Positions 680 to 57,244 are shown, counted from the stretch's first letter. The stretch is DNA of 64,000 nucleotides from Podarcis melisellensis (GCA_964234715.1 OZ174282.1); one strand, 5' to 3'. Made by a program: numbers and translations. Notes: generated by a model not told the origin, from the sequence alone.

Positions 680-1840
680 ACGCAATTTTGACACAAGACT
701 GTCACATGGCTTCCGTTGCAGCCTGAAGGAGGGGGCGGGGAGTGTGTTTGCGTGTAAACAACAAAGCCCATCCATCTGCAAATGGAGACAGCAACCATCT
801 AGTGATTTCATATCAAAACTCTTTGATTCCAAAATGCAAAGGCACTGGCTGTCTTACATGTTCCAGAGCTTTACATATGAGCTCCCCAAAAATATAGTGG
901 TGCACTGCCCGTGTTGATTATGCGTTTGTACTGCACACATTAATGGTGGAGTCCACATAGATCCATATCTAATGGCCTACTCCTTTCCAGAAGAGTGGCC
1001 AAGAAAATAAAAATAGAACCATTTATAGAGCCCCTTATGCGATTTGTTTGCTGAGTTCCCGTAGAAAGCACTTAGAACAGTCAGGTCGGGTACCTCCATC
1101 TCATTGGCTACCTCCCCATTTTGCCTGAGAGGCTCTTTTGTGCAGGCCACACCCACCCACCCAACACCTGACATATCTGACTTCAGGTGTGAGGGCAGGT
1201 AAGAGCAGGATTTCAAATGAAGAACTAGGAGCTTGGAGAAGTCCTTGCAACGTGGACTTCAAAGTGCAGCATCACCTGCCTGGACTGCCAGGGTTGAAGA
1301 GGGAAAGATCTGGCCCAGCAGCCAAAAATGTGCCCTACAGAGATTTGGGGGGGGGGGGTTCAAAGGCTGCTTTTCTAGATACTGGGTGTGGGACAGAGTT
1401 AAGTAGTTAAGGAACAGGCCCTGCCAATGTCTGATGCCTGGTGTGGCTGTGGGGTGGGGAATGAGGGTTACGCCCTAAAGAGGTCCCTCATAAGGAACTT
1501 AACTGTGAGGGTTTAGAAAATGATAATGTTACCTTAACCATACTTTGCTTGTAGTATAATTCATTCTCAAAATTATGATGCACCTTGCATCTAACGTGCG
1601 TCAATAAGGAGCAGGTGGCAAGTCTATGGGGAAGTGCACTTTACACATGCTCAGGAACATACTTCCTATCTGAAATCTGATTGTGAGGCAGAAGCAGGAG
1701 AAAAGCCAATAGGTGTTCAGGTTTCGCCTCCTCTTTGTTGGCAAAAACGTGGCATAGCAAGAAGCAGCTTTGGTCCTGCACAGCGTTTTACCTTTAAAAT
1801 CACAAAATACGGAAAGGAAGAGCTGCTCGTGTCACTATTT

Positions 1841-1853
1841 CGCCATCTGGTGG
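1841..1853 (-). promoter_or_regulatory. CTCF-like motif
   Basis: Reverse complement CCACCAGATGGCG fits the CTCF core; it lies between the KMT2B 3' end and the next promoter. Confidence 0.5.
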
Positions 1854-1870
1854 GTTGAGGCGGTAGGGCT

Positions 1871-2338
1871 TTGTTGTTGTTTAGTCGTGTCCGACTCTTC
1901 GTGACCCCCTGGACGAGAGCACACCAGGCACTCCTGTCTTGCACTGCCTCCCGCAGTTTGGTCAAACTCATGCTGGTAGCTTCGAGAACACTGTCCAACC
2001 ATCTCGTCCTCTGTCTTCCCCTTCTCCTTGTGCCCTCCATCTTTCCCAGCATCAGGGTCTTTTCCAGGGAGTCTTCTCTTCTCATGAGGTGGCCAAAGTA
2101 TTGGAGCCTCAGCTTCATGATCTGTCCTTCCAGTGAGCACTCAGGGCTGATTTCCTTAAGAATGGATAGGTTTGATCTTCTTGCAGTCCATGGGACTCTC
2201 AAGAGTCTCCTCCAGCACCATAATTCAAAAGCATCAATTTTTTGGCGATCAGCCTTCTTTATGGTCCAGCTCTCACTTCCATACATCACTACTGGGAAAA
2301 CCATGGCTTTAACTATACGGACCTTTGTTTGCAAGGTT
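1871..2338 (-). mobile_element. BovB (RTE-clade LINE), 5'-truncated 3' end
   Basis: ORF 1717..2334 reads KVRIVKAMVFPVVMYGSESWTIKKADRQKIDAFELWCWRRLLRVPW...GVTKSRTRLN, followed by a (CAA)n tail. Candidate TSD GGT[A/C]GGGCTTTG at 1862-1873 and 2339-2350. Confidence 0.93.
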
Positions 2339-2929: not shown

Positions 2930-3468
2930 AAGTAGGGGTGATCACATGAGCAGCCAGTCAACTATAGTTAAGAAGTAAAAGGGATGAAAAGAAAGATGGA
3001 TGATTAAATGGAGATGCAGCACACCTTGGGTTTATTATGAATTCCGTGGAATGCTAGGTTGGGAGGTCTGTATGTAAATATTCAGCGTGGAAGGAATGTG
3101 ATGTGCAAAAGGAAAAATGGAAGATGCATAAGTATTATATATATATCCACACAGTAACAGAATGATTCCTTAAAGTTGTTTTTTATTTTATTTAAAAAAG
3201 CACTATTTCACCCAGGTGCATAGAACTTGGGAATTTCTACTGCGGTAAGAACTGGTGTGTGTACATTTTGGTGGCTTATTAGAAATGTTATGTTTTTGCC
3301 AACTTGCTTAGACGGTAGGCAGCTGTTTTTTCAGTAGGCAAAGTGAACCTTTTGGAAAAATACAGACCTTTTTTTTTCATTTTTGCAGCCCCTTTTAAAA
3401 TAGGAAAGGTGAAGGGGTTTAAAAACACACACATATAAATGAGTCCTTTCTTTCCTTTGTTTCTCCAG

Positions 3469-3573
3469 GTGGCTTTGCTCTGCTGCCTTTCCTGTGGCTG
3501 GTGAACGTTTTCTGGTTTTTCCGAGAGGCCTTTCTGGTGCCGGCGTACACTGAGCAACTACAGATAAAGCGCT
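3469..3573 (+). CDS. PSENEN: Gamma-secretase subunit PEN-2, middle coding exon (105 nt)
   Basis: ttctccag|GT GGC TTT... encodes (G)[34 protein letters not shown], ending |gtgag. Confidence 0.95.
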
Positions 3574-3860
3574 GTGAGTTGTGGTGCAAATCCTAGGAAG
3601 TGGGAGGGCAGGGGGCAGGGCAGGTGTGAGATCCCTCCACATGTTGCTGAACTACAACTTCCATCAGTTCCAGCAAGTATGACCAGTGACCAAGAATGAT
3701 GGGAGTTATAGTTCAGCAACTTATGGAAGACCAAAGATTTCCCACTTCTGCGCTAGGAGGGGAGCCCAGGCCACCTATTTGGGCAGTGCCAGATAGCATA
3801 AGGATCTGTGCTTAAATGGAGGTGACTGTGGTCATGGTTTTCCATCTGTTTCCATCCCAG

Positions 3861-4000
3861 ATGTCCAGCGTTCAGCCATGGGGCTTCTTTTCTGGGTGAT
3901 CGTGCTCACCACGTGGATCAGCATCTTCCAGGCGCGCCGGGCAGAGTGGGGCGAGCTTGGCGACTACCTCTCCTTCACCATCCCCCTGGGCACTCCGTGA
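3861..4000 (+). CDS. PSENEN: PEN-2, last coding exon
   Basis: catcccag|AT GTC... encodes [46 protein letters not shown], including the diagnostic DYLSF motif. AATAAA at 4204-4209. Confidence 0.96.
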
Positions 4001-15579: not shown

Positions 15580-15840
15580 CGCCGAGAGAACCTTCCCGGC
15601 TGCCTCCTTTCCAGAATAGAATCCTGATGGCATGGATGATCCAGACACGCCTTTCCCCGCTGAGCCGCGCCTCCGCCCATCGGTTCCCACGTGAGCCTCG
15701 AGGCTAGGCGAGCGCCAGGCCCCGCCCCTTTTCAGTGGCCCCGCCCACCCGGGCGCTTCGCGGGGCTTCCCGCTCCGTCCCGAAGGCTCTTCTGCGTTCC
15801 AGCGGCTTCCAGGGGGCGGAGCCGGCCGGGTATAAAAGGC
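15580..15840 (+). promoter_or_regulatory. CpG-island promoter of the small HSP gene, with GC box and TATA box
   Basis: GGGGGCGGAG at 15812-15821 and TATAAAA at 15831-15837, about 100 nt before the ATG at 15934. Confidence 0.8.
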
Positions 15841-15933
15841 GCCGCGGCGGGCCGGGCTGGGCGTGCGCTCCCCTGGCCGCGGTCTGTGTTCTGCGCGTCT
15901 CCGGCTGCTCGCCCGCCTTCGCCTCTCCGCGCA

Positions 15934-16158
15934 ATGGACATCGCCATCCACCACCCCTGGATGCGGCGCCCCATGGGCTTCCCTTCGGCCTTCCCGTCGC
16001 TCTTCCCGCCGCGTCTTTTCGACCAGAGGTTCGGCGAAGGGCTCTTCGAGAGCGACCTGTTCCCTGCCACGCTCAGCCCCTATTACATGCGCACGCCCAG
16101 CCTGCAGATGCCTGCGATGCCGCAGATGCCGCAGATGCCGGACACCGGGCTTTCGGAG
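15934..16158 (+). CDS. HSPB6: Small heat-shock protein (HSP20/HSPB6 by synteny, alphaB-crystallin-like), exon 1
   Basis: [75 protein letters not shown]|gtagg. Confidence 0.85.
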
Positions 16159-17454
16159 GTAGGTGTGCTTTGCGTTAAGTTTTGAACGCATCTGGGGCTT
16201 TTGTGCGGAATTGCATCGGAAAAGAAAAGAAAGATCACGGGAAAACTTAGTTTTCTAATCCCCCCCCCATGTATGTCGTGATGCCTCTGGCCATGTGCAG
16301 AATGCTTTTTTGGCCGAGCAACAGCGCGGCAGGTCCCCCGCCTAACCGGAGGCTGCTGAGGGGGGTTGCTTAGGATTAAAAGGGAGCAGAAATGCCCGAA
16401 GATGGGTAGGGCTCGGTGTCTGGACCTGCGTCGTGGGAATGGGTGTGCCTGCGTGTCGGGAATGTGACGAGGACCCGAAAGTAGTGGTGCTGCTGTTGCC
16501 AATTGGTGAAGGTGTGCGCTTGAAAGAGGAAAGGGTGCCAAGGGGCTGGCAGGCTGTGCTTACCTATTATGGTAACATTCTTCAGCCGCCCCAGCTGGCC
16601 CTATGGGGGAGCAGGGGGGAGACAATGCCAGCTGGGTTGTCTTGCCCTGCAGGGAAGGGGCTGGCATGCAGGACTCAACCCACGCTCCACTCTCTGGACT
16701 CTTGCTATACAGAAGACGCACTGTCTTGCTGGCTCCCTGCCCACAGCTGCCTGGAGTTACTTACCAGCATGGGGGCATAAGAGGTGGCCTTGCCCCAGAT
16801 CAGATTATTTGTCTGTTTAGCCCAGTACCACCTGCTCTGACCGGCAGTGACTCTCCAGGGTCCCCGGGGAGATCATTTCCCCACGTTGCCGCCAGATACC
16901 TGATCCCGAACTGGAGGAGTTGAACCTTGGACCTCCTCCATCACCCCAGATAGTTGCTGCCTATATTAGAGATGCTTCCTCGCTCAGTCGGACATTGGCT
17001 GTTGTTTCTGCTGTCCACACTGGTGGAGAATCCCAAGAATTCCCCCCACCCCCAAGTCCCTTCTGCTTGTGGTTAGAACGGGATGTGCCGGGGGGCGGGG
17101 GTTGAACCAGGGTCCTTCTCTGCATGCAAAGGAGCTGTAGTCATCAGCTCCATAAATAATAATGACTAAATAATATGTAATCGGACCTGGGAAACGAGGG
17201 GTTCTTTTAAGGGCTGTGGCATTACCACCCAACTGTTAGAATTCATCCTTGGGGAGATTTCAGCGCAGCCTTGCACTGCTGCTGCTGCTGCCGCCGCCAC
17301 TTAACTCCCCATGCATGACTGGCATACTTGGGCTTTTTCTGTCTTGCGCCTGCTTTTTCCAATGTGCTTCATCACACCCCTTGGCAGGGAGATTGCTCCT
17401 GTGTTCTTGGCGCACTGGCTCTAAATATACAGCGGTCCTACCTAGAAGACCCTG

Positions 17455-17585
17455 AGGAATAGCTCAGTCGGTAGTGCCTGAAACTCTTCAGTCTTGGGTT
17501 TGAGTCCCACACTGGGCAAAAGATTCTTGCATTGCAGGGAGTTGGACTGGATAACGCTTGTGGCCCAACTCTACAATTCTATGAT
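17455..17585 (+). mobile_element. tRNA-derived SINE with CR1-like tail
   Basis: TAGCTCAGTCGGTAG A-box, GGTTTGAGTCCC B-box and ATTCTATGA tail; a related copy is on the minus strand near 36497-36625. Confidence 0.7.
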
Positions 17586-18343
17586 ATTCTTAGCTAGCTA
17601 CAAAAGGGTGTAAAATACAGACCATTCTCGCCCATATTATAAAGGGTTGTGTTTAGCCTGGAGGGGTTGTTGCCGTGTTGGTTTCTGTAACTGCTACCCT
17701 GTGCTCATAAAGTGGCTTCATGGTGGCTCTAACTTATTATTTAACAATTAAAATGGCTGATTTCTTTCCTAACCACTGTGCATATATTAAGATAATATCA
17801 GAGGCAGGGAACTTTGGTCAGCCCAACGACACACTTCCCTTCTGGACAAGCTTTTGTGTTGGTAGGCGAGAATGAGCAGGGCAGCGAATGTGAATTCTGC
17901 CTTATGCAGTCAGCTAGTATCTGCACACCCTGGCATACCTGTTTGGTCCTCCATCCAGACAAACGAGAAGCCTTAGCATAATTCAATGACTTATTCCACC
18001 CAGGCAGAAACACTCAAAGAGGGTGTGGTCTTGGAAGAAATGTGTGAGTCTCAGGGCCACATACAGACCTGGAGGGCAGCATTTGGCCCCTGGGCCTGGG
18101 CATCCGATCCCTGGATTAAGACAGTTGCTTCTCACAGTCTGATAAGGCATGATATAAAAGGAAGAAGGAATGGTGAGGGAAGAGGAAAGCAAGCTCTGCG
18201 CTTTGGCTGCGTATGTTACTAGAGCACTTACTTTCTTCCCCAGGCTTTTGATGGACTGCGGTGGTGTTTGCTATTAGTTATGCTTCTGTTATTGGGGATG
18301 TCCGTCCCCCTCCTCCCCGTAGATGTGTTTTTATTATAATGTA

Positions 18344-18542
18344 CAGTGGTACCTCAGGTTACAGATGCTTCAGGTTACAGACTCCGCTAACCCAGAAATA
18401 GTATGTCGGGTTAAGAACTTTGCTTCAGGATGAGAACAGAAATCACGCGGTGGCGGCAGCAGGAGGCCCCATTAGCTAAAGTGGTACCTCAGGTTAAGAA
18501 CAGTTTCAGGTTAAGAACGGACCTTAACCCGAGGTACCACTG
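18344..18542. mobile_element. Mariner/Tigger-like MITE (CAGTGGTACCTC family)
   Basis: TIRs CAGTGGTACCTC...GAGGTACCACTG with a TA flank; four copies in the window. Confidence 0.85.
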
Positions 18543-18789
18543 TGCTTGTTTATTGTGCTCTCAGTATCTATTTTTTGGGAGACTTTGTTCAGCCGGCAAC
18601 TAACAAGTTCAATGAGTTATAATAGTCCTTGCTAAATATGCCCAGTGGTGTTAGTGCCTACCCTGTGGCTTGTTGAAGAAAGCAGTAAAAGGGTCCACAA
18701 CAGCACCTCTGTGGGCAGGGGCAGCTGGCCTGCAGAAATTGCTGTCTGTTGAATCCAGTTTTTACTTTGTTTTCCCCCCTTCCACCCAG

Positions 18790-18912
18790 GTGAAGATGGA
18801 CAAAGACAAGTTCTCTGTGCTGTTGGATGTGAAGCATTTTTCACCTGAAGAGATGAGCGTGAAGGTGATTGGGGACTACATCGAAGTTCATGCCAAGCAT
18901 GAGGAACGGCCG
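18790..18912 (+). CDS. HSPB6: Small HSP exon 2 (123 nt, alpha-crystallin domain)
   Basis: cacccag|[41 protein letters not shown]|gtatg. Confidence 0.9.
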
Positions 18913-19569
18913 GTATGTAGCTTCATGGGTTCTTTGTGGGGTGACCCTGACCTAAAAGATCCCTGTGGTGGCCGTAGGCCAGTGTTCTTCAACCTTGGGA
19001 GTTGTCGTTCAGCAAAATCTGGGGACTTGCCATCCTTGAGCTGCCATCAGCTAAGCTGCCTGGGAATAATGGGGTTTGTGGTTCAGCAACTTCCAAGACC
19101 CGAGGTTGAAGAACACTGGCATATCCAAAAGCAGAAAGTTAAAGCTGCCATCCTAAGTCAACCCCGGAAGCAAATCCTATTGAACTCCGGAGTCCTCTTA
19201 GTCTGTACGTAGGGATTTGGAAACCTCAGTAGCTGGAACTGCCTGGAAAAACATCTGTTGCTGCACCACCAGTGTCCAGAGCAGAATCCATGGCCCTCCA
19301 GAGATTGTTGGAATTGCAGCTTGCATTGGTCCCAACCAAAAGGGTTTATGGCCAGGGGTGCAGGGAATTGTAGTTCAGCAACATCTGGAAAGGCCACAGA
19401 TCCCGCCCCCACCACAAGCCGTGCCTAAAATGTGCAAAAACTACATGCATCGGTAAATAGAAGACATCTGAAGGCAGCCCTGTTTAGGGAAGCTTTTAAT
19501 GTTTAATAGACTATCGTATTTTAATATTCTGTTGGAAGCCGCCCAGAGTGGGTGGGTTATAAATAATAA

Positions 19570-19613
<44 letters not shown>

Positions 19614-20035
19614 GGCATGTGTTGCTGCCTGAACTTCCTGTTTGAGTTGCCTTGGGCAGGCAATATAAAGCGACTAACCAATTTAATAAATAAAATAACT
19701 TTGGAACTCCCTGCCTGTTGACATCAAGGAGGCGCCTTCCCTGCACTCTCTTTCAGTGCCTGCTAAAAACGTTCCTGTTGAAACAAGCTTACCTAGATAC
19801 TTAGAAAGCTGAGGCGATTTCAGTGTTTTAGTATTTTATCTCTAGAAGTAGGGTTCTAAAATTTTACTTGGGGTTACTGGTTTATCTTTCCATAAACTGC
19901 TTTGACCTTTTTCCTTTTAAACAATCAAACGGCGTATAAATTTTGTGAATTAAATACATAAATTTATTGGTGAGAGTGCTGGTTTCTGGACCCCCTTTAG
20001 TCACTTGCCTGTTTTTGCGTCTCCACTCTTTATAG

Positions 20036-20233
20036 GATGAGCACGGCTACATCTCCCGGGAGTTCCACCGCCGCTACATGATCCCCAAGGGGGTTGATCC
20101 AGCAGCCATCACCTCTGCCCTGTCTCCCGACGGGGTGCTATCCATCACGGCGCCGACTACCCAGGCTCTTCCCGGAGTGGAGCGCAGCATCCCCATCAGC
20201 CGCCAGGAAAAGCCTGCCGTCACCGGAAAGTAA
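20036..20233 (+). CDS. HSPB6: Small HSP exon 3
   Basis: tttatag|[71 protein letters not shown] at 20627-20632. Confidence 0.9.
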
Positions 20234-21458
20234 TAGGGTAGCAGCCTGGCTTGGCTTTTTGCTCTCCGTTTTTACCGGAAGCCAGCAAGCATCTGAGGCC
20301 TGCTCTCCCCTCGCTAGTAGCTGCAAGGGCTGCTCACTCTTCACAGAAGTGACATTCCCCTCTGCCCCCTCCCTGCTGAGGTTCTGGCAGCAGAGACTAT
20401 ATATTGCCTCTAGGGTGGTGATCCTTTAGTGCAATTTCCCTACACTCCAGTAGGACCTTCCTGGAGTAGAGATTGGGCCCTTTCTTCTTCTGGCTAGGAG
20501 TACCCTTCTGTTGCAGGCTTACTCTGTGCACCACTGTTTATGCCAGACTCCTTGCTTTGTATAAATACAGATGCCACTTGGGTACATGTACTTGCTTAAA
20601 AAACAGATGTCACATTGATACTTGCTAATAAACATGATGTTTCTGCCTTCTGAGTGTGTGATTGCATTCTGGACGTGGGAGGGCAATGAACCTTAAGGCG
20701 GCACCAGCAGGGAAGGTGGATGGTAGCAAGTTTCCACATCACTGACCATGGCATTGACCGCTGTATTCCAGATTAGAGCATAAGAGCATGGCAGGATCAA
20801 GCCTATCCAGCAGCATATTCCTTCAAGTGGACATCTTGAAAGTGAAGGAGCAAGACATGGGCATAAACGCCCTCTCCTTAGGAAATCCATAAAACACTCT
20901 AAAAAGGATAGTTATTTTGCAGAAGCCATGCTGATTCTTCTCTAGCAAAGCTTGTTCTTCTATTTTTTTCAGTGCTTTCCACCAGTTTTCCCAGGACAGA
21001 TGTCGGGCTAACTGGTCTGCAACAGCCCAAATCCCAATATATTTCCCAAATACTTAACCTTACACTAGCCACTTTCCACTCTTCGGGTACAAAGGTTGAT
21101 TATTAGCGACAAGTTGCATGTTGTTGTTAGATCAGCAGTTTTGCATTTCATTTCTCTTAAGAATGCTCTGAGGGCTGTCATCTGGACCCGATTACTTCTT
21201 TTGAATTGGTTGAGGACGCCTAGAGCATCATTGTGTGACGCCAATATTTGCAGTAGGACCTGGCAAGAGGATTTGGTTGTTAAACCCCTGGGAATTGTAG
21301 CTCTGTGAGGGGAATAGGAGTCTCCTAACAACTCTCGGCGCCCTTAGCAAATTGCCCTTCGTATAATTCTTTGGGGGAAGCTATGATTATTCAAAGGGCA
21401 AAGTGGCAGATGGGGCCTAACTTAGACCATTAATTTGAATGGGTCTACTCTCAGCAGA

Positions 21459-29998: not shown

Positions 29999-30080
29999 TC
30001 ACTGCCGCTCGTACATCTCCTTCAGAATCTTCATGCTCTCCGAGTATCGCAGCTGGTTCTTGTGCGATCCCTCTTTCCAC
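29999..30080 (-). CDS. LIN37: LIN37 (MuvB/DREAM subunit), last coding exon
   Basis: [26 protein letters not shown]; AATAAA on the minus strand at 29901-29906. Confidence 0.95.
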
Positions 30081-31126
30081 CTGTGAATAGCGGAGGCTAC
30101 AAGTCAGCCACACAGCCCCGTACGTCTCTTTATACCCATGGCTCTCTCAGATCAGTTGTTTCCCACGATCCCCACAAACAGCGGTCGCTGGTGCCCCTTG
30201 AGGTTGGTAGGGTGTAAGGCGGGGAGACCAATGGTAGGTGGCGCTAGAGTCTTATGGTGGGCGGAGCTACCTAGTTCTAGTTTCGTCTCCAATTTCCTCC
30301 CTGCTAAGCTCTATGGCAGAGCTTCCCAAACTTCTCATGTCAGTGACGCATTTTTTAGTCATGCGTCGGTAATTCGGTTTTACTAGTAAGCCGGAGGTTA
30401 AAGTAACCCCTTATAAGAGCGTTCACACAAGCATGCCTACACACTAACGTGCTGCAACACACAGTTTGGAAAGCTCTTCTGCTCTACAGGAATCAATGGA
30501 GAGGAAGCCAGGGCCACTCCCTTGACTGGCCACAGGTAAGGAGGGAGGCAGGTAAGGGGCTGGGTTGAGGGCAGAATGAAGTTGGTGGCAGTGGCTTTGG
30601 TAATATGGTGCCCTGAGGGAGGACAAAATCCCCCCCTTCTTATTTTCACAATAATTCATTTTGGTACAGTTGATTTTTTATATACCTGGTGGTGTTGTTA
30701 TTTGGCATTCCTTCAGCTTGGTGCCCTGTGTGGGCGACCAGCTTGCACCACCCTAAATTGCCTGGCACCATTATTCACTTTTAGGTGCCAGGCAAAAACA
30801 TTCCTCTTCAGCCAGGCCTTTGGCTAACATCCTATATCACTGAAAATGTGTTTGTGTGAGTGCTGGGGAGGGGCGGTTATGGGTTTATTTCATTCCTGTT
30901 TTTATTATGTATTCTGAGTTTTAATCTAGTATTTTTATGCTCGCGAACCACCCTGAGATCTACCAAGGAAGGGTGCTAAACACAATTAATAAAGGACAAT
31001 GGTCATAAATGAATCTGGCAGTTTGTGGGGCAGTGCCCCAGTTTGCCTTAATGGACCGGCCTCCTCTGCAAAAGGTTCTCTGGCTCATGCCCTCCTCCTC
31101 CTTGCTTCCAGAGCCCAGCATCCTAC

Positions 31127-31200
31127 CTCTGCCTGATCTTCTTCCACCGCTCCATGTTCTTGTAGATGAGGGAGGACATTGATGGTACGGCATCAGAAGC
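31127..31200 (-). CDS. LIN37: LIN37 coding exon 8
   Basis: ASDAVPSMSSLIYKNMERWKKIRQR, flanked by AG/GT. Confidence 0.93.
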
Positions 31201-31207
31201 CTGGAGT

Positions 31208-31211
<4 letters not shown>

Positions 31212-31272
<61 letters not shown>
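31212..31272. repeat. (GA)n microsatellite
   Basis: About 30 GA units. Confidence 0.97.
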
Positions 31273-31276
<4 letters not shown>

Positions 31277-32433
31277 GATTTCGTCAGCACTCTGCTTGGC
31301 CTAAAGCCCTGTAGGGCTGACACAGCAGCCTGGCAAGCAAAATAACCCAATCAACTCAAAAGCTATCCAAAGGCCAAGAAGCAAATGAAATGAAGATGCA
31401 GTAACCCCCTTAGTTGGAGAAAATAAAAATGCAGAGATATATTTTCTTGCGGAAATCACAGTCAACATGCTGAGAGTCCATTGACCTTAAATAATTATCT
31501 TTACTTGTTAAAAGAAAATGTTTAAAATGGCCTATACATTCAATATTTGCACGTGTAAAATTTGTGTATTTATGCGAGTGCAGCTGCCACCAGTAGCAGA
31601 CAATACTAAGCTTCAGAGATCAATGTTTTGGTTGGTATAAGGCTTCCTATATGTTTATTGGCTGCCGTCCACTTCAGATAAAATGCCACCCTCAGTTGAC
31701 AACTCTATCTACACACATAAAAAAAAGGTGGAGGGGAAGAGAGAGAATGTGAACAGCGGGAAATCCCTGGTCTTGACAGAGCCCCTAGTGAATAGAATCA
31801 AACTTGCCGGAAAATTCTAGTTCAGTAACTATTAGTTGATGGTTGTTCAGCCTTTGTAGTTATTTATACTCAGCTTTCCCACATAGCTCAAAAGAAGCTT
31901 GCAACTTTGAGATGTCATACTAATGCAACAATAAGGAAAAAGAAGAGTTCAGTCCCCAGTCTCAATAATAAAACCCAACAGCACTCAATATTGCTTAGAG
32001 CAAACTGCAAGCTCTTACAAATTTCCCCAGGTATTCCAGAAACCGAGGGAACGCTGTGGTGAATTGCAGTCCGTGGCTGCCCAGCCTGGCCAAGGATTTT
32101 AACACTGCAGCAGGTGAAGCTGAGGCCCCCATCTGCACAATTCGTTTAAAGCAGTATCATGCCACTTTAAACAGTCACGCCTTCCCCCCAAAGAGTCCTG
32201 GGAACTGTGATTTAATGCTGGGAGGTGTCAGGAGACCCTTCTCCCAATTCCCCTCCCAGAGCTACAATTCACAAAGTGGTTTCACAGTCAGACCCTCTTC
32301 CTGGAAATTGCAGCTCTGTGAGGGGAATGGGATTTCCTGACAGCTCTCAGCACTACAGTTCACTGGATCCTTATTGTGGATGTGTTTGCTGCTCTTGGCT
32401 CCTGCAGGAGGAAGAGCAAGATATAAATATAAA

Positions 32434-32580
32434 CAGTGCTTTCCCCCCTAAAAAAAATGCTTAGGGGTACTCTCATTTTCCTACTCATATTGAAATACTG
32501 CCCCTCAAAGAGGCCAAACTTAGATTCACAAAATGTTTAGGGGTATGTGTCCCCTGTGTCCCCCCAGAAAAAAAGAACTG
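32434..32580. mobile_element. hAT-type MITE
   Basis: CAGTGCTTT...AAAGAACTG ends; 8-bp TSD AATATAAA. Confidence 0.7.
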
Positions 32581-32591
32581 AATATAAATAT

Positions 32592-32944
32592 AGGTAAAGG
32601 TAAAGGGACCACTGACCATTAGGTCCAGTCGTGGCCGACTGGGGTTGCGGCGCTCATCTCGCTTTATTGGCCGAGGGAGCCGGCGTACAGTTTCCGGGTC
32701 ATGTGGCCAGCATGACTAAGCCGCTTCTGGCGAACCAGAGCAGCGCACGGAAATGCCGTTTACCTTCCCGCCAGAGCGGTACCTATTTATCTACTTGCAC
32801 TTTGATGTGCTTTCAAACTGCTAGGTGGGCAGGAGCAGGGACCGAGGAATGGGAGCTCACCCCGTCACGGGGATTCGAACCGCTGACCTTCTGATTGGCA
32901 AATCCTAGGCTTTGTGGTTTAACCCACAGTGCCACCCACATCCC
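32592..32944 (-). mobile_element. Sauria SINE
   Basis: TSD CTGAATATAAAT at 32578-32589 and 32944-32955. Confidence 0.92.
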
Positions 32945-33030
32945 TGAATATAAATTGCTTCAAATCAGCAGAGCTCCCACACTCCTTTTCTCCCTTCTCC
33001 CCCAACTCCCTGCTTTTAGGGTGCTCTGAC

Positions 33031-33180
33031 CGTGTCAGCAGCTACTTTCGCCTTGTCTTCAGGCTCTAGCGGGGATGGGATACGAAGGTTTACTGGTTCC
33101 CCTGCGGCATTTGTGTGGCAGGGAGCAGGAGGCGGCAGCTTGTACACATCCTGGCTCTTCCCATTCAGACCTTCGGCGCC
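33031..33180 (-). CDS. LIN37: LIN37 coding exon 7
   Basis: GAEGLNGKSQDVYKLPPPAPCHTNAAGEPVNLRIPSPLEPEDKAKVAADT, phase 0/0. Confidence 0.9.
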
Positions 33181-33445
33181 CTAGGATCAAAAACACGGGG
33201 AAAGAAGAGAGGCACAGGTTCAGTATCTCTTCGACTGTGGACTTGCCAAGCCGAAAAGTCCTCCCCCTCCATTCATTTCCTATGTTTATACCCCACCCCT
33301 TTCCCAGCTTGAGGCAGTATACATGGGAATGTTCCAATTTCATGATCACAATGTAATCTGGGAGGTAGGTTAGGCAACGATTGTGTGCTGTGGGGGGCTG
33401 AGTAGGGATTTGAGCCTGGTCTCTGCGGTCCAACTCCAAACCTCT

Positions 33446-33876
33446 TTATTAAAAAATATTTTTATTAAGTTTTACATAACAAATTTAAATTCAAACACAT
33501 CTTTCACCTCCTCATTTAGACTCCTCTGAATCTCTTGACTTCCCTCTGCCCTTCCATTGTTACCATTGTCAATCTTTTTCCCCCTTCATGTGCTTATCTT
33601 ATTTTCTCTAATTTGTTAAAAGAATAATAATCTATTTTCCCATAGTTTCTTGTACATTACAAGCACCACTCAAATCCTGCCAAAGTTTTTAGTTGTTTAC
33701 AGTGTTCTCTTAAGTACATTATAAATTTTTCCCATTCCTTCTTAAAATTCTTCTCTTCCTGGTTTCTGATTTTCCCAGTCAGTTTCACCATTTCGGCATA
33801 GTCCATCACCTTCATCAGCCATTCCTCTCTGGCTGGAACTTTTATCTTCTTTCCATCTCTGAGCCAGGAGCCAAGA
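33446..33876 (-). mobile_element. L1-clade LINE 3' end interrupting an older SINE
   Basis: Homologous to 26021-26515; TSD CCAAACCTCT at 33436-33445 and 33877-33886. Confidence 0.7.
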
Positions 33877-34450
33877 CCAAACCTCTAACCACTATGCCAC
33901 ACTGCAGGGCTGGCCTCATCATTGGGCAGAGTGAGGTGGCAGCAAATTATTGGTTATTTAAAACTCAGAAGCAAAGTGGCTGTGTGAGCTCCTCTCTGGG
34001 AGGCCTGCAAATTTGTGTGGTCTTGCTGAGCCAAGGTGTGGCCTAACATGTTGAACCTCGCCAGTACACACAAAAGAGTATTAATCAAAAAGAGTGAGCT
34101 TTGTTTTCATGGCAGCTGGGTAGAATTCTGCCCAATGTCAGTGCAGACCGACCACAGCCAACCCTTCCCCTCTGAAGTTTTGTGGTAATATTTTTTGATG
34201 TTGGATTAGGTGGTAGTAGCACAGGCATTCCTAGATCCCTTGAGGTAATAGTAAGCTGTGAGAGTTTTCTGGGCCACCTTTGCCAGGCCCTGCCACACTG
34301 AAACAAGATGGCGGCAGCAGCGGATGGGGGGAGGAATACCAGTCTGCTACCTCCCCCTTGTCTGCCACCTGTGGCAAAGGGCTCACTCTGCCCAATGAGA
34401 GGACTGGCCCTGCCACACCCTTTCCTAAGTGAGGGCCTCTTATTTAGTAC

Positions 34451-34617
34451 CTCCTCATCCTCCAGTAGGACAGGCAGATTCGGGCTGGGAGATCGCTCCT
34501 GTTCCCGGACCATGGGGCTGTTCCGCATCCAGGCCCGACAGATGGGGTACAGCGGGGTGCTCTCCGAGAACTGAGCCAGGTCGACGCTCCGGTCAAACAG
34601 CTTGATGACATAGGTGT
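34451..34617 (-). CDS. LIN37: LIN37 coding exon 6
   Basis: (N)[55 protein letters not shown], containing the conserved CRAW motif. Confidence 0.97.
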
Positions 34618-34720
34618 CTGCGGGGGACAAGGTAGCAAGACATAGCTCTGCAAGGCAGCCCTTTTAAAATGTCATCCAATTCTTGGGGTTATATGGGAGC
34701 CAATAAGGGCTCCATTTATT

Positions 34721-35200
34721 ATCAATCAATCAATCAATCAATCAATCTTTATTATGGTCCAGAGACTCAACAAATCGTTACAAAGCAATGCACAATTCAG
34801 ACAGCCTACCTCCAGGTTAAACAAGCATTTTGTTCAGACTTAAGGATAGGAATCATTGGTTCTTGCAACCACTGATTAAAAACTTTGCCACTGCTAATGT
34901 TCTAGCATTTGTCCGGTCTTCCAATAGGAACCTGACATAGTGAGCCTCTGATTTTCCTGGGAAAGGTACCAGCAAGGGTAGTATCAGTTCAGCCCTGGCT
35001 TGCTCATATTTTGCACAGTGCTGCAAAATATGTTTTATGGAATTGATGTCTTGAGCACACGAGCAAAGTCTGTCCTGGTAGGGAACTCCTCTCAACCTGC
35101 CATCCAACACGGCAGAAGGAAAGACGTTTAGTCTGGCTTTGGTGAAAAACCTTTGATAATTTGGTACTGTCAGGTTTTTAATGTAAGATGTTAACTTAAA
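34721..35200 (-). mobile_element. Non-LTR retrotransposon 3' end with CCHC knuckle (RTE-X-like)
   Basis: RFFTKARLNVFPSAVLDGR...RLCSC...KHILQHCAKY, followed by an (ATTG)n tail. Confidence 0.7.
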
Positions 35201-35505
35201 GACATGTCCAATTATTATTATTATTATTATTACCAGTGTTGGTAACAATAGGTGGAGCCAGAGCCAATGACACACAAAGCCATGACCTTACCAGTTGTAA
35301 GGAAGGAGGCAGGGAATGGCTAAGGGCAGAATGAAGTTGATGGGGCAGTGCCCCATTTGCTCGGATAAGCTGGCCTGCACTGGCTTCAAGGATTGCCAGC
35401 TTCAAGGAGGGGATAGGCTCCACCCACATCCTGGTTCGGCCAACTCTGAGATCAACCACATCTTTCGGAGGAGTCCTGCTGGATCAGCCCAATGTTTCTA
35501 CTCAC

Positions 35506-35591
35506 TCTGTTTCTGCTGCCCACCCTCCGTCAATCCATCATCCGTCTCTTTCCTCTTCTTGCGGCGGTGGTGAGAGAACCGGCTGGACGGC
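35506..35591 (-). CDS. LIN37: LIN37 coding exon 5 (basic NLS-like)
   Basis: PSSRFSHHRRKKRKETDDGLTEGGQQKQ. Confidence 0.93.
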
Positions 35592-36701
35592 CTGAGAGCA
35601 ACGCCACAGTTTAGAAACTGTGCAGCTAGCCGACTCGCTGCACAAGTGTCAGAAAGGCCTGGAGGCACTTTCCAAGTCCTGGGGGCAAGGCACAGCATCT
35701 CTTGTGCAACCAAAACTGAAAGCCGCTAACACTGGCTGATTATTATTACTATTATTTATTAAATTTGTATATTGCACAGTTCACAGCATAAAATTACAAC
35801 ATAAAAAACACAAAATACAAAATCTGATGGAAATGCTGCATAGCGCAAGCCTTAAAAGCTGGAATATCTGACCCTCCAGGTCTTGCTGAATTACAATTTC
35901 TATCATCCCAGGCCACTAGCCATGCTTTTTGGGGCTGACAGGAGCTGTAGTTCATTCTGCAACACCTGGAGGGACGAAGGGAGAGGGCTCACCTGTTGAC
36001 CTTGAGACAGGCTCTGAGGACCTTGGAAGCAGCAAGAAGCTGCACTGCTTCTCAGTCTGTGTGTGCTCAGGCACAAGATCCCAACCTTTCCTCAAGTTCC
36101 CCCTGCATGTCAGTGGGTGGTGTTGGTGGCAAATACAAGCAACAGCTGGCCAACAAAGCCAACCAAAATGTGTGAGCCCATGAAGTAACACAGGGCTAAC
36201 TCAGTTTTACTCAGAGTAGGATCCACTGAACTTAATGGACCTAAGTTAGTCATGTCCATTAATGGCAACGGATCTACTGAGTAGGACTAACACAGGATAC
36301 AACCAACAGTCTGATGTTTGCAGCAGCAATAGTTTCAAGCCTGAGAGACCTGTGCTAGAGAACCTCCAGAAGGTGTATTTTGAGTGATAGGCTTACTTAA
36401 CTTTATTATTTGAAATCCAGCTCAGGAGCATCAACTGGCCAATCCACACTGCCTAGTCCTAAATGCCATCTTCCGGTGAATGAGTACAGTGGAATAACAG
36501 ACTCGCAGAATTGTAAGAAGGGACCACGAGGATCATCTAATCCAACCACCTGCAATGCAGGAATATTTTGCCCAATGTGGGGCTTGAACCCACAACTATG
36601 AGATTAAGAGTCTGAGCTAAGCTGAGCTAAGAAAAGTGAAATCTGAAATCTCCCATGCTATTGTTATCAACAGGTGGGAAAGACGCTGTAAAGAACCATA
36701 C

Positions 36702-36731
36702 CTCTTTCCTGTGGCAGTAGGAGAAGAGTCC
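36702..36731 (-). CDS. LIN37: LIN37 coding exon 4 (30 nt)
   Basis: tttcag|G DSSPTATGK AG|gtatgg; keeps the reading phase. Confidence 0.85.
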
Positions 36732-37131
36732 CTGAAACCGCAAAGCAAGAGGATTTAGGAATTGCCCAGAATGCAACAGCTTCACCAGCAAGAAGAAAAA
36801 GGAAAAAAACCAACACCCTACTCTCCAGGATAGCTGGTCCCAGGAGAGGATTAACCATTCTTAGGGTTTGGGGCCCCCCAAGAACACTCCTCTCCCATGA
36901 CTTTCAGTAGAAGTCGGCTCCATTTTTAAAGCCCTTATATAAAAATAAATATCCCACAGCAACTTTACAAATTAAGATCTTTTCTATTAGCCCTCTTGGC
37001 AAACACAGACACACAAAACCTAGTAGATAGGTTTGTTTATTTTCTGCATATTGTTATATCCCTAACATATCAGGATATTTAGGGCAAAGCTGTGAGGCTC
37101 ATTTTCACAGGTTCCTTCCATTCTCCTAGAC

Positions 37132-37453
37132 CAGGGGTAGGCAACCTAAGGCCCGGGGGCCGGATGTGGCCCAATCGCCTTCTCAATCCAGCCTGCAGAC
37201 GGTCTGGGAATCAGCATGTTTTTACAGGAGTAGAATGTGTCCTTTTATTTAAAATGCATCTCTGGGTTATTTGTGGGGCCTGCCTGGTGTTTTTACATGA
37301 GTAGAATGTGTGCTTTTATTTAAAATGCATCTCTGGGTTATTTGTGGGGCATAGGAATTTGTACATATTTTTTATTCAAAATATAGTCTGGCCCACCACA
37401 TGGTCTGAGGGACGATGGACCAGCCCATGGCTGAAAAAGGTTGCTGACCCCTG
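37132..37453. mobile_element. hAT-type MITE
   Basis: CAGGGGT...ACCCCTG TIRs; 8-bp TSD TCCTAGAC. Confidence 0.9.
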
Positions 37454-38242
37454 TCCTAGACACTTTGGAGAGAAAAGAAAGGAAAGAAACCCAGAGAAGA
37501 AGCAGGAAACAAAAGCCAACTGTCTAAACACATGATTCTCAACAGAGGTGGGCCTCGGGGGGGGGGGGAGAAATCTTTCCTTTACTCAGTTTCAACATAC
37601 GCCTGGGCAAGAGTCTTGCCCACCTGTTCACATTCAGTGTAACACAGGAAGTATGTGCAGTCATAGTGGATTTACTGGATTCAGTGGGGCTTACTCGCAG
37701 GTAAGTGGGGCTACACTATCAGCCTCATCCACCCAACCCTAAACTGCTGGGAATAAACAATGAAGTATGGTCATTACCATTCTGCACTGCCACAGCAGTT
37801 TTTAAAATATATTTTACTTCTGCAAACCTAGAGTTCTCCCAGGTCTAACTTTTTTGTGCATGGGTGGTACCATTCTGGCAACTCTGGCACCCTCAGCCCA
37901 ACCATCAGAAATAAAGGGAATGGTGTTGTTTGCTGCCCAGGATCCCGGAAATAGGATACTAGACAAAATGGACCTTTGCCCGGTCTAGAAGGGCAATTCT
38001 TAGTTCCAAAGTGGCAGGACCACAGGATCAAAGAATTTTAGTTTTGTAGGTCAACTACTTCAATACAGGAATCTCCTCCACCCACCCCAGTTTTCCCTGG
38101 CTGGCAGACATAGCTACAATATTATTATAGCTATCTAGGAGCTGGCTCTTGGCAACAGCCTCCTCCCCACCCAAAAACTTCATGGCATGGCACAGCAGTC
38201 AAGGGCAAGCGAAGGCAACTAGGGAATGCTTGAGCATCTTAC

Positions 38243-38293
38243 TTGCTGAGTACATCTGAGGGAGTCTTCCCAGAGTCCTCTTCCATCTGCTCC
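38243..38293 (-). CDS. LIN37: LIN37 coding exon 3
   Basis: EQMEEDSGKTPSDVLS, flanked by AG/GT. Confidence 0.9.
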
Positions 38294-38394
38294 CTGCGGA
38301 GATGAGTCAGGAAAAGGGGGAACAGGATGTCAGCAGCCGTGTCCGAGGAGGAAAACTGGCATCTCACTTGAGGACCCACCTCTTGGAGCAACTA

Positions 38395-38625
38395 CAGTGG
38401 TACCTCGGGTTACATATGCTTCAGCTGTAAGCTAACCCAGCTGTTCTGCTAACCCAGAAATATTACCTCAGGTTAAGAACTTTGCTTCAGGATGAGAACA
38501 GAAATCGTGCAGCGGCGGCACAGCAACAGCAGGAGGCCCCTAAAGTGGTGCTTCAGGTTAAGAACAGTTTCAGGTTAAGAACGGACCTCCGGAATGAATT
38601 AAGTACTTAACCTGAGGAACCACTG
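38395..38625. mobile_element. Mariner/Tigger-like MITE (CAGTGGTACCTC family)
   Basis: TIRs and TA TSD. Confidence 0.85.
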
Positions 38626-38766
38626 TACTCCTTGCAGGAGAAGGAGCTAGTCGCAAAGCACGCCACAAGGAATCTAAGGCCTTTTCCTTCTAGGCAAGGC
38701 TAGATGAGAAATCGCAAGCATACACATTGCCGACTCCTTAACCCAAAAGAACCTGGAAATACTTAC

Positions 38767-38842
38767 CGATCAACCTCAGACTTCTCGAGTAGGCATTGCA
38801 GCACAGCATCGAGGCGGTTTCGAGCATTGGCCGTCTCTAGAT
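38767..38842 (-). CDS. LIN37: LIN37 coding exon 2
   Basis: DLETANARNRLDAVLQCLLEKSEVD. Confidence 0.93.
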
Positions 38843-39075
38843 CTGGGGAAGGTCCGCAGGAGAGGAAAATCATTATTCTGGCAGAAAGCGTTTACCCATC
38901 CCCTCCACTTTACAGTACAACATAGGATCTCTTCTCTCGCCATAGCAGCTGTCCCCAACCTCATGCCCAGTGGGTGCTGTGGGGCTGCAATGATGAGGTC
39001 ACTTCTGCACTGCCCTTTCAGCCGCTGCTGCTTTCCCCTGACTTTCGTGGCAGAGTTTTTTCAGAGCCCCCTTAC

Positions 39076-39109
39076 CTGGCTTTTCCGTTTTCACCTTCGT
39101 GTGCAGCAT
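39076..39109 (-). CDS. LIN37: LIN37 first coding exon
   Basis: ATG at 39109: MLHTKVKTEKP G|gtaag. An acceptor at 39131/39130 implies an upstream UTR exon (candidate donor at 39626). Confidence 0.88.
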
Positions 39110-39879
39110 GTTTACCAGAATCACAGTTCCCTGCAAGAGAAAAAATAAACCTGTGTCTCACTTGATACAGAGGATTCTGGCCATTACGGCCAAGTGATAT
39201 TGAATGTTCAAAATGGGAAGATATAGTGTATGAACTAAGGAGGCAAACTGAAAATACCTTAAAGGTTGGATGGGTACCTTTAACAAGCATGGGATTTTGC
39301 AAAGAAGGGCCACAAGACTGCACCTCTTGCGCACATTTCTGGCCTCCGTGTTTACAGCAGCTTTACCTTTTTTTACCTTACAGCAGTTTCCTCTTTCTCT
39401 ACCGACCCTTCACGTGATCGATGAAGCGGGATCTCTGGGATCTTTTTTATTTTTATGTTGCCAAGCTCCTGCCAGGCAGCCAGCCCTGTAAGCTCTTGCC
39501 CGGGAACAAGCCCTACTGAACTCGGTGGGGCTTACTCCCGAGTAGACACACGCGCAGCATTCCACTGCCCGGCTCGTCACGGGCTCCAAGGTACAGGAAA
39601 GGCTTTCGGTTCTGCTGCAGCTGACCTTTCGGAGCTGCTTCTTCTGCGCTGGATCGCGTTGCCTCCAGGAGAGAGGGCAGAAGCCGGTCCCCGATTCTCC
39701 GGACCAAAGGACTTTGCTTCTTGCTTTGCTGCTGGCCTTTCTGCCCTTGCTCGGCCTCGCGCGATCCCGGACACCCCCAAGCGAAGAAGCAGCAAAACAC
39801 CCGCAGTTGCAACAGCAGAAGCCACCTCTCTGCCAATCGCTCCTTCCCTGATGCCAGTTCGCACGAATGCAGAAAAACC

Positions 39880-39990
39880 GCCTCTGGCCCGCTGCATGCT
39901 GGGAGTTGTAGGCGACTTTTTGCCGGGGGCGGGGCGGGGGCGGCAAGCTTCGGCCAATGGGCTGCCCGCTTCCCTTCTTTGAATTGATCT
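39880..39990 (-). promoter_or_regulatory. LIN37 promoter
   Basis: SBS/ZNF143-type CTACAACTCCCAGCATGC (minus, 39894-39911), tandem GC boxes at 39925-39942, CCAAT at 39954-39958, and a CpG island. Confidence 0.75.
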
Positions 39991-40367
39991 CTGCGTTCTG
40001 TGCGTGTGTATTTTAAGGAGCAGGTCACAGTGTAAGATTGGGAGTCATGGGGTTGGTGGAGAAGAGTGTATTTATGAACTTAACAGTGCTTAGTTTATTA
40101 TTATTTTTTTGGTTGCTCTTTTTGTAGAACAGCCCAGTTGGAAGGGTCATTGAATCCTGCCCACAGCTGTTGCCCCTGGGTGGGCTCGAACCACCAAACT
40201 TCCTAAGCCTCTCTGCAAAGTTTTCGCATTTCACATTTTTTGCATACTGAGTTAGTAGTAGTAGTTGCTGACCACTGACCCGTATGGAGAATCTGGTCCC
40301 ACCGCAGGAAAGCCTCTTGATTGCTAGGATGGAATGGAGGGGAAATAGGGCTGGCTCCAGGTCTGGT

Positions 40368-54872: not shown

Positions 54873-54966
54873 TACTGAGTCTCTAGTCTAGCCTGGGAGT
54901 GATCACTACATTGAAGTAAAGTTCTTTTTCCATGTCTGTGATGCGGCACCTTTGATCCTTTGGCAG

Positions 54967-55112
54967 GTATATGGAGCGATTTCGTTACGGGCAGCCCACA
55001 AGCCGCAGGGAGCGCTGGGCACCAAATGGTCACTCTGCACAGTTCTGGTGGCTTGGCCACTCGTTTCCCCCTGAATGCAACATCTCCAAGAAGGAGACAT
55101 CGCCAACTTCAG
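54967..55112 (+). CDS. PROSER3: PROSER3 coding exon 4
   Basis: YMERFRYGQPTSRRERWAPNGHSAQFWWL..., a conserved Y..RFR..QPTSR.ER / FWWL block. Confidence 0.92.
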
Positions 55113-55979: not shown

Positions 55980-56041
55980 GCAGTAGCCAGAGTGAAGTGA
56001 GGCAGTCGCTTTTCAGTCCTGCTCTGGACCAGTCTCCCTCG
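55980..56041 (+). CDS. PROSER3: PROSER3 coding exon 5
   Basis: ttgcag|GSSQSEVRQSLFSPALDQSPS|gtgag; needed to bridge phase 1 to phase 0. Confidence 0.65.
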
Positions 56042-57018: not shown

Positions 57019-57098
57019 GGGGACTCACAGGATTCTTCCACGCTGGACCCTGAGACTGTTAAGCTCCAGGAGAGAGCAGCCAGGCTGTTACACAGAAG
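57019..57098 (+). CDS. PROSER3: PROSER3 coding exon 6
   Basis: GDSQDSSTLDPETVKLQERAARLLHRS, matching LD.ET..LQ.RAARLL.RS. Confidence 0.9.
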
Positions 57099-57244
57099 GT
57101 ACTAACCTCCCTTGTATTTCACTCATCATCTAGGCTGCCCTTCCTCAGTGTCTAATGGGCCTTCCAGCTTCTCTTTCTGTTCTCTCCCCAGCTGCCCCTC
57201 ATTCCTAATAACCTGCCTGTCCTCATATGTTTTTCTGCATGCAG

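Follow-up and report, generated by a model that had tools for sequence, protein, structure and literature searches.

The stretch of DNA analyzed here (the window) comprises 64,000 nucleotides of one strand from the lizard Podarcis melisellensis (GCA_964234715.1 OZ174282.1) and contains, between positions 15934 and 20233, the coding exons of one small heat shock protein (sHSP). The gene is very probably a single, intact and transcribed lacertid orthologue of HSPB6 that lies in a PSENEN/HSPB6/LIN37/PROSER3 neighbourhood and carries the ancestral termini of its subfamily, the human and rat form of the protein being derived. Knowledge of HSPB6, i.e. its dimeric state, the lack of a C-terminal tail motif, the role of Ser16 and 14-3-3, and the effects on smooth muscle and heart, comes nearly entirely from human, rat and mouse. 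Ser16 of HSPB6 is a target of the protein kinases A and G (PKA/PKG) and a mode-I site for 14-3-3.

The HSPB6 gene and its expression

The coding sequence consists of three exons on the plus strand (15934-16158, 18790-18912 and 20036-20233), which begin with the ATG at 15934, end with the final base of the TAA stop at 20233 and, translated exon by exon from the window DNA, yield an sHSP of 75 + 41 + 65 = 181 residues. Exon 1 encodes residues 1-75 with the N-terminal domain (Pfam PF00525, alpha-crystallin N-terminal domain, E 1.5e-24), exon 2 encodes residues 76-116, the first half of the alpha-crystallin domain, and ends with HEERP, and exon 3 encodes 65 residues; the latter two match HSP20 (PF00011) with E 5.6e-8 and E 3e-10, respectively. 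The query for exon 1 was its 164-codon open frame, and the exons were otherwise searched singly. Intron 1 (16159-18789, 2631 bp, GTAGGT...CCCAG) and intron 2 (18913-20035, 1123 bp, GTATGT...TATAG) are phase-0 introns that follow ..GLSE and HEERP. A coding region in three exons, interrupted by phase-0 introns behind ..GLSE and HEER[P/Q], is typical of the CRYAA/CRYAB/HSPB6 subfamily, whose RLFDQxFG motif is present at residues 27-36. The intron position between HEER[P/Q] and DEHG is common to koala and lizard HSPB6 and turtle CRYAB, and DEHG likewise opens an exon in turtle HSPB6. No second copy and no other sHSP-like sequence was detected in the 64 kb by tblastn with E up to 10.

A pattern scan located a TATAAA box at 15831-15836 (plus strand), with GC boxes upstream at 15673-15819. 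The spliced RNA contig described below starts at 15855 and molecule ends in the RNA-seq data lie at 15881, 20-50 bp downstream of the TATAAA box; the 5' untranslated region is placed at 15855-15933, its start being approximate and RNA-seq depth beginning in the 15777-15953 bin. The same scan found no perfect nGAAnnTTCn heat-shock element over the 330 bp preceding the ATG, and just one TTCnnGAA, at 15609. The 3' untranslated region (20234-20644) contains an AATAAA poly(A) signal at 20627 and ends with the spliced contig at 20644, close to the drop in RNA-seq depth past the 20556-20732 bin.

The RNA evidence consists of two stranded RNA-seq runs of one related lacertid and one contig of a third species. 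The junction 16158/18790 is spanned by 73 and 110 RNA reads in the two runs and the junction 18912/20036 by 79 and 113, with a depth of about 80-220x over the three exons and of zero in the introns outside repeats. The 1040-nt contig represents the complete spliced mRNA from 15855 to 20644 with both junctions exact. The run that contains the whole stretch is genomic DNA, in which the introns are covered. Coding differences from P. lilfordi amount to 10 synonymous versus 1 non-synonymous, and the introns are 92-95% identical. The HSPB6 locus is under purifying selection, intact and transcribed.

At the protein level exon 1 is identical to Podarcis muralis HSPB6 in 74/75 residues, exon 2 to P. 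lilfordi HSPB6 in 41/41, and exon 3 to both P. lilfordi and Zootoca HSPB6 in 65/65. A nine-base repeat coding for M-P-A/Q (16108-16140) varies in copy number among lacertids: it is one unit shorter in P. lilfordi and one M-P-A unit longer in Zootoca (184 residues for the whole protein), and the differences between the spliced contig and the window are concentrated within the repeat, at 16113-16124. An A>C change at 15973 in the RNA-seq of the relatives replaces M14 by L, as in other lacertids. For the full-length steps (tree, fold and PDB search) the HSPB6 of P. lilfordi (P0003) served as proxy for the window protein; it is identical in exons 2 and 3 and differs in exon 1 by M14L and one M-P-Q unit.

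Intron 1 contains SINE-like (short interspersed element) high-copy repeats at about 17370-17720 and 18255-18608, and intron 2, at about 19317-19670, a repeat together with an (ATT)n run. These repeats reach a word depth of up to millions in the DNA run and are abundant in the RNA-seq on both strands. The stretch at 17.44-17.50 kb has a tRNA-derived appearance, and the element at 18.3-18.6 kb is classed as an inverted-repeat SINE-like one because of the 'opposite strands' joints found there.

Gene neighbourhood, phylogeny and the protein termini

Upstream of HSPB6 lie two conserved exons of PSENEN (PEN-2; 3456-4000, plus strand), which match the koala PSENEN region in tblastx with 70-79% identity (E 1e-30). 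Downstream, LIN37 (29999-39750, minus strand) is convergent with HSPB6; its exons (about 29999-30083, 31126-31203, 33049-33210, 34450-34634, 35500-35594, 36698-36748, 38237-38302 and 38766-38852) are collinear in tblastx with koala and turtle LIN37, and the minus-strand frame 34085-34630 matches PF15306 with E 1.3e-23. PROSER3 (54965-61945, plus strand) follows with exons at 54965-55054, 58397-58486, 60241-60288 and 61847-61945, collinear with koala at 50-67% identity in tblastx. The turtle order is PEN-2, HSPB6 and convergent LIN37, the elephant order PROSER3, HSPB6 and convergent LIN37, and the koala order PROSER3, HSPB6, LIN37 and PEN-2, which leaves a slight difference in that PROSER3 adjoins HSPB6 in mammals and LIN37 in the window. 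At the P. lilfordi locus no neighbour gene is called within the flanking 10 kb. Turtle CRYAB is located on another contig, head-to-head with a 182-residue HSP20 gene (HSPB2-like), and also adjoins CFAP68 and a gene with an FDX-ACB domain; such CRYAB-type neighbours (HSPB2, CFAP68, FDXACB1) do not occur at the window locus. The open full-text literature yielded no paper on the squamate CRYAB/HSPB2 locus.

The maximum-likelihood tree of 76 proteins (LG+C20+F+G4), with the lacertid proxy included, supports clades of HSPB6 (98/89), CRYAB (95/90) and CRYAA (100/100). The proxy is nested in lepidosaur HSPB6, outside the CRYAB clade. Turtles, frogs and a caecilian are each represented by one protein in the HSPB6 clade and by another in the CRYAB clade, and both genes coexist in the tree members Hymenochirus, Pelobates and Rhinatrema. 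Mammalian HSPB6 is placed on a long branch. Because of its PSENEN, LIN37 and PROSER3 neighbours and the placement of the proxy in the HSPB6 clade, the window gene is assigned to HSPB6, not to CRYAB.

The similarity of the protein to its relatives differs by region. Among solved chains human CRYAB is the best match, with 229 bits for the proxy versus 178 for the 149-residue HSPB6 chain, 60 versus 48.5 bits (human HSPB6) for exon 1, and 77.5 versus 64 bits for exon 3; the exon 3 alignment covers residues 1-64, including the tail, with human CRYAB and residues 1-44 with rat and human HSPB6. The first 14 residues of the proxy agree with CRYAB in 12/14 positions, with turtle HSPB6 in 10/14 and with bovine HSPB6 in 3/14, and the C-terminal 23 residues in 14/23, 13/23 and 4/23, respectively. 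For the alpha-crystallin domain the values are 54-55/83 with CRYAB, 62/83 with bovine and 72/83 with turtle HSPB6. Regional identities were used instead of signature columns because fish CRYABs vary too much: a single column with at least 85% agreement (G36 versus H) splits HSPB6 from CRYAB. The set of CRYAB-type core residues (FGEH, SVNLDVKHF, HEERQ, HRKY) was not found in the window protein, which reads HRRY.

At the N-terminus, codons 11-14 (15964-15975) read R-R-P-M opposite the R-R-A-S with Ser16 of eutherians, 'wlrrAS' of the human HSPB6 chain 5ltw_C being aligned opposite 'wmrrpm' of the window. At the C-terminus, codons 168-170 (20189-20197) encode I-P-I, the anchoring (IXI) motif, which aligns with ERTIPITREEKPAVT of human CRYAB. 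Of the proteins retrieved, those of squamates, tuatara and turtles, of frogs, salamanders and caecilians, and of coelacanth and lungfish have the start MDI[AT]IHHPW[ML]RRP and the tail ER-x-[IV]PI, and CRYAB and CRYAA likewise carry an MDI-type start and an ER-x-[IV]PI-type tail. Since they are common to CRYAA, CRYAB and all non-mammalian HSPB6 sampled, the crystallin-like termini are considered ancestral for the CRYAA/CRYAB/HSPB6 subfamily. From the sequences compared, mammalian HSPB6 is the derived form and the lizard termini are no peculiarity of lizards.

Eutherian HSPB6 (human O14558; PDB 5LTW, 4JUS, 2WJ5) shares with the lizard gene the locus beside LIN37, PROSER3 and PSENEN, the three exons, the HEERP/DEHG intron, the segment GVDPAA.TSALSP and 62/83 identical residues in the alpha-crystallin domain. 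Its N-terminus reads MEIPVPVQPSWLRRASAP, from which that of the lizard differs, and the lizard protein therefore has no Ser16 and no RxxSxP. The lizard protein also retains the pre-domain DTGLSE strand that is absent from eutherian HSPB6, has a 26-residue tail with IPI in place of a Pro/Ala-rich tail without an IXI motif, and is 181 residues long versus about 160. With CRYAB (HSPB5; PDB 2KLR, 3J07, 2YGD) it has in common the N-terminal tip, ESDLFP, LSP-[FY]-Y, DTGLSE and the tail ER-x-IPI-x-R-x-EKPAVT, but it reads RFGEG where CRYAB has FFGEH, LL versus N-L in beta3, HEERP versus HEERQ and HRRY versus HRKY, and differs in neighbourhood and clade. Other non-mammalian HSPB6 (Zootoca, Podarcis, Sceloporus, Thamnophis, Sphenodon, turtles, Xenopus, Latimeria) have the same architecture, with identities of 96-100% by exon for lacertid orthologues, about 80-86% for other squamates and tuatara, and about 66-70% for turtles, amphibians and coelacanth; the window protein differs from them in M14 instead of L14 and in the copy number of the MPQ/MPA repeat.

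In related genomes the gene is mostly named 'heat shock protein beta-6', while the name 'alpha-crystallin B chain(-like)' is attached to orthologues from Vipera, Platysternon, Pleurodeles, Rhinatrema and Podarcis muralis; all except those of P. muralis, four in number, were included in the tree and fall in the HSPB6 clade. The first-pass annotation of the window had described a 181-residue protein at the HSPB6 locus with an HSPB6-type core and CRYAB-like termini, RRPM in place of RRAS and an IXI motif. All strings quoted there are present, the regional identities agree, and both the synteny and the sHSP phylogeny with the proxy place the gene as it proposed. Its proposal that the architecture is ancestral agrees with the distribution of the termini, and the risk of mis-annotation as CRYAB that it foresaw is borne out by orthologues of five genera.

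Additional HSPB6-like entries named 'alpha-crystallin B chain-like' exist outside the window in Podarcis muralis (P0004, P0005, P0030) and Candoia aspera (P0085). Many of their Arg residues are changed to His (RR to HH, ERS to EHS, SRQ to SHQ), and their exon 2/3 junction is disturbed, which looks like the CpG decay of a redundant or dead copy.

Elsewhere in the window, the region 39400-40030 between the 5' end of LIN37 (minus strand) and the start of PROSER3 (plus strand) is GC-rich with long open frames on both strands and is probably the shared bidirectional CpG-island promoter of the two genes. A 205-codon open frame at 1717-2334 (minus strand) resembles the C-terminal part of the reverse-transcriptase open reading frame of a long interspersed element (LINE), and a 424-bp copy of this stretch, 95.5% identical, occurs at the P. 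lilfordi locus. A run of 200 N at 2730-2929 represents an assembly gap or mask.

Distribution of the eutherian hallmarks

Three traits were counted in 81 HSPB6 proteins, 56 of them non-mammalian: a tail motif defined as [IVL]-P-[IVL], RR-x-[ST] and R-x-x-[ST]-x-P. The tail motif occurs in all lepidosaurs (22/22), turtles (5/5), amphibians (27/27) and lobe-finned fishes (2/2), so that an I/V-P-I tail is present in 56/56 non-mammalian proteins; a site of the RRxS type is absent from 55/56. RR-x-[ST] was found in 1/22 lepidosaurs (Gekko kuhli) and R-x-x-[ST]-x-P in 2/22 (Lerista, Erythrolamprus), with neither in turtles (0/5 and 0/5), amphibians (0/27 and 0/27) or lobe-finned fishes (0/2 and 0/2). 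All marsupials carry the tail motif as VPI (5/5), one has RR-x-[ST] (1/5; Sarcophilus, RRPT) and none R-x-x-[ST]-x-P (0/5), and the monotremes lack all three (0/2 each). Eutherians, including elephant, tenrec and sloth, have RR-x-[ST] and R-x-x-[ST]-x-P in 18/18 and the tail motif in 1/18, the single case being a fortuitous VPV at another place in the tail. Among the non-eutherians 2/63 proteins have RRx[ST] and 2 others Rxx[ST]xP, with both in one protein in 0/63.

The RR-x-S-x-P site requires one change on the tree. At the corresponding position marsupials read WLRRPAP (one RRPT) and monotremes WLRRPLG, and the N-terminal MD-I-A-I became MDVPV in monotremes and MEIPVP in therians. Because RR-x-S-x-P is found in 18/18 eutherians and is missing from the marsupials and monotremes, the Ser16 site is regarded as a eutherian, not a mammalian, gain. 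Judged by these motifs, the Ser16/14-3-3 site and the dimer-type tail look like late novelties of placental mammals. The statement of the first-pass annotation that mammalian HSPB6 lacks the IXI motif thus holds for eutherians, the chance VPV aside, and for the two monotremes, and fails for the marsupials; its suggestion that Ser16 may be a mammalian innovation has to be narrowed to the eutherians.

The marsupial proteins (koala, opossum, antechinus, Tasmanian devil) resemble that of the lizard in the lack of Ser16 (RRPAP), in the tail motif ER-[KT]-VPI-AQG and in the same neighbours, and differ from it in the start MEIPVPIQPSW, an Ala-rich LAALCP segment and the loss of DTGLSE. Going by their sequences, marsupial HSPB6 is intermediate between the lizard and the eutherian types. 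The tail motif and the therian N-terminus can coexist, as marsupials have both.

The proposed course of events starts with an alteration of the N-terminus on the mammalian stem (to MDVPV.. or MEIPVP..), after which eutherians and monotremes would have lost the tail motif, apparently by separate events, and RR-x-S-x-P would have appeared once, on the eutherian stem. This may reflect a stepwise rebuilding of HSPB6 in mammals from an oligomer-forming, CRYAB-like chaperone to a dimeric signalling adaptor, in which I-A-I changed to a V/I-P-V groove binder, the IXI motif became dispensable and was lost twice, and RR-x-S-x-P was then gained once; the chances of this scenario are put slightly below even.

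Two sequences bear on the Ser16 position itself. The shrew Suncus (P0148) reads WLRRPSAP, with the Pro kept before Ser16, and Sarcophilus (P0120) reads WLRRPTP. They hint at an origin of the eutherian site via a hydroxyl residue after RRP, with Pro-to-Ala later; or else both are reversals of later date.

No bird or crocodilian HSPB6 is among the matches listed, though turtle, tuatara and squamate are present and no dedicated search was made; this blank could be due to gene loss or to an assembly gap. One paper about the family of HSP genes in chicken contains zero mentions of HSPB6. In the open full-text literature no paper was found with a statement that the tail motif is retained in non-mammalian HSPB6 or that Ser16 is specific to eutherians; older subscription papers on sHSPs lie outside this coverage, and a prior description is possible.

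Alternative explanations, predicted function and significance

It is very unlikely that the window gene is the lizard CRYAB, or a CRYAB duplicate, which resembles HSPB6 in the core alone. Such an identity would agree with the better match to human CRYAB among solved structures, for exons 1 and 3 as well as for the whole protein, with the source names of several orthologues, and with an approximately unbiased (AU) test, which did not reject the lepidosaur proteins together with CRYAB as one clade (p 0.216). Against it stand the PSENEN, LIN37 and PROSER3 neighbours with no HSPB2 in the 64 kb, the location of turtle CRYAB on another contig beside an HSPB2-like gene, the separation of both clades in the tree with turtles, frogs and caecilians in each of them, and an alpha-crystallin domain that is closer to HSPB6 (62-72/83) than to CRYAB (54-55/83). 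A lizard-specific mosaic, i.e. an HSPB6 with exons 1 and 3 replaced by CRYAB sequence through gene conversion, would account for CRYAB-like termini around an HSPB6-like core by regional identity, but these termini are shared by all non-mammalian HSPB6, those of coelacanth, lungfish, frogs, turtles, tuatara and snakes included, as well as by CRYAA, and the HSPB6-type RFGEG (FGEH in CRYAB) sits inside exon 1; because the pattern is common to all non-mammalian HSPB6 retrieved and to CRYAA, it is taken as inherited and not as the product of recent conversion, which is considered extremely improbable. Practically negligible is the chance that the open reading frame belongs to a copy that is decaying or silent, comparable to the R-to-H-rich ones of Podarcis muralis and Candoia: such copies do exist in relatives (P0004, P0030, P0085), but here the frame is intact with canonical splice sites, exons 2 and 3 are identical in protein to those of two lacertids, synonymous changes prevail over non-synonymous ones by 10:1, and stranded RNA-seq covers the correct junctions in two samples of a related species.

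More room is left for an explanation that concerns function, although it is still rather unlikely, namely that the lizard protein works like eutherian HSPB6, mainly as a dimer or in hetero-oligomers with HSPB1 or CRYAB, with N-terminal phosphorylation elsewhere and possibly with 14-3-3 binding via another site. The groove-forming alpha-crystallin domain and the motif of the N-terminal domain are conserved with mammals, R53-T-P-S56 aligns with R-A-P-S of human HSPB6, marsupials combine the VPI tail with the therian N-terminus, and the stability of oligomers is not set by the tail motif alone (PMC6073470). On the other side, residues 1-30 of the window protein and of 19/22 lepidosaurs contain neither Rxx[ST]xP nor RRx[ST], and the tail ER-x-IPI-x-R-x-x-KPAV has been conserved for more than 400 million years in three paralogues, a conservation from which it is argued that the tail is in use.

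Several points weigh against the favoured interpretation as a conserved HSPB6 orthologue with ancestral termini and a function to match. The RNA evidence is from related species rather than from the species of the window, and the full-length results were obtained with the P. lilfordi protein as a stand-in and not with the window's own. Separate CRYAB and HSPB6 loci were shown in a turtle assembly and not in the genome of this lizard. Apart from the AU result for lepidosaurs alone, the grouping of all non-mammalian HSPB6 with CRYAB was rejected marginally (p 0.046), turtle HSPB6 (P0056-P0060) grouped with mammalian HSPB6 (100/99) contrary to the species tree, and two eutherian rows failed the composition test; the turtle and mammal grouping points to a pull by composition or by long branches. 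For the two monotremes the tails come from gene predictions, which disagree with one another. What is said of oligomer size, PKA phosphorylation and 14-3-3 binding is read from motifs, and the IXI motif alone is insufficient for large oligomers. In view of the two AU values orthology rests mainly on synteny, with which the tree agrees, and for orthology and the ancestral state confidence is high.

An Ala/Gly/Pro-rich segment (LAALCP.GLGP) is common to turtle and mammalian HSPB6, in place of which lepidosaurs and amphibians retain another segment; this likeness is likely to stem from convergent GC-driven change.

The AlphaFold2 model of the proxy shows a beta-sandwich at residues 73-155 with a predicted local distance difference test score (pLDDT) above 90 and termini with pLDDT 45-59. 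In sHSPs the tail motif docks in the beta4/beta8 pocket of an adjacent dimer, and its presence is correlated with large oligomers, whereas human HSPB6, which has no tail motif, is dimeric and fills the beta4/beta8 pocket with an N-terminal V-P-V (PMC6073470; PMC6119766). HSPB6 phosphorylated at Ser16 forms a 2:2 complex with 14-3-3 (PMC6802120). Residues 11-16 of the window protein read R-R-P-M-G-F, and the features of the human/rat functional type, RRAS with Ser16 and a tail without I/V-x-I/V, are not found in it. S48-P aligns with LSP of CRYAB, and R53-x-x-S56 with RAPS in human HSPB6.

The lizard HSPB6 is accordingly expected, at the level of motifs and the fold model, to possess a disordered N-terminal domain, a folded alpha-crystallin beta-sandwich and a short C-terminal extension, whose IPI would dock in the beta4/beta8 groove of neighbouring dimers. 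Such docking would lead to polydisperse oligomers or co-oligomers like those of CRYAB, and the protein would act as an ATP-independent holdase. A PKA/PKG and 14-3-3 switch at position 16 is not expected, and the serines of S48-P and R53-x-x-S56 may carry other regulation. This biochemical part (oligomers, holdase, no PKA/PKG-14-3-3 switch) is rated as somewhat probable.

The window gene itself is an ordinary, conserved and expressed HSPB6 orthologue, with nothing particular to this lizard, and the ancestral termini explain the recurring label 'alpha-crystallin B chain-like' on orthologues of HSPB6. Among the 81 orthologues the hallmarks of HSPB6 are confined to placental mammals, and the lizard type represents the vertebrate state of several hundred million years. 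Caution is advised in transferring the Ser16/14-3-3 mechanism to Xenopus, reptiles or opossum. The series from lizard and turtle via marsupial to eutherian offers natural material on the roles of the IXI tail and the N-terminal motif in assembly. If the interpretation is true, the smooth-muscle relaxation pathway from cyclic AMP and cyclic GMP (cAMP/cGMP) via pSer16-HSPB6 to 14-3-3 would be a placental invention, lacking in non-eutherian vertebrates, and the lizard and marsupial proteins would represent natural 'before' and 'halfway' versions of an sHSP losing its oligomer.

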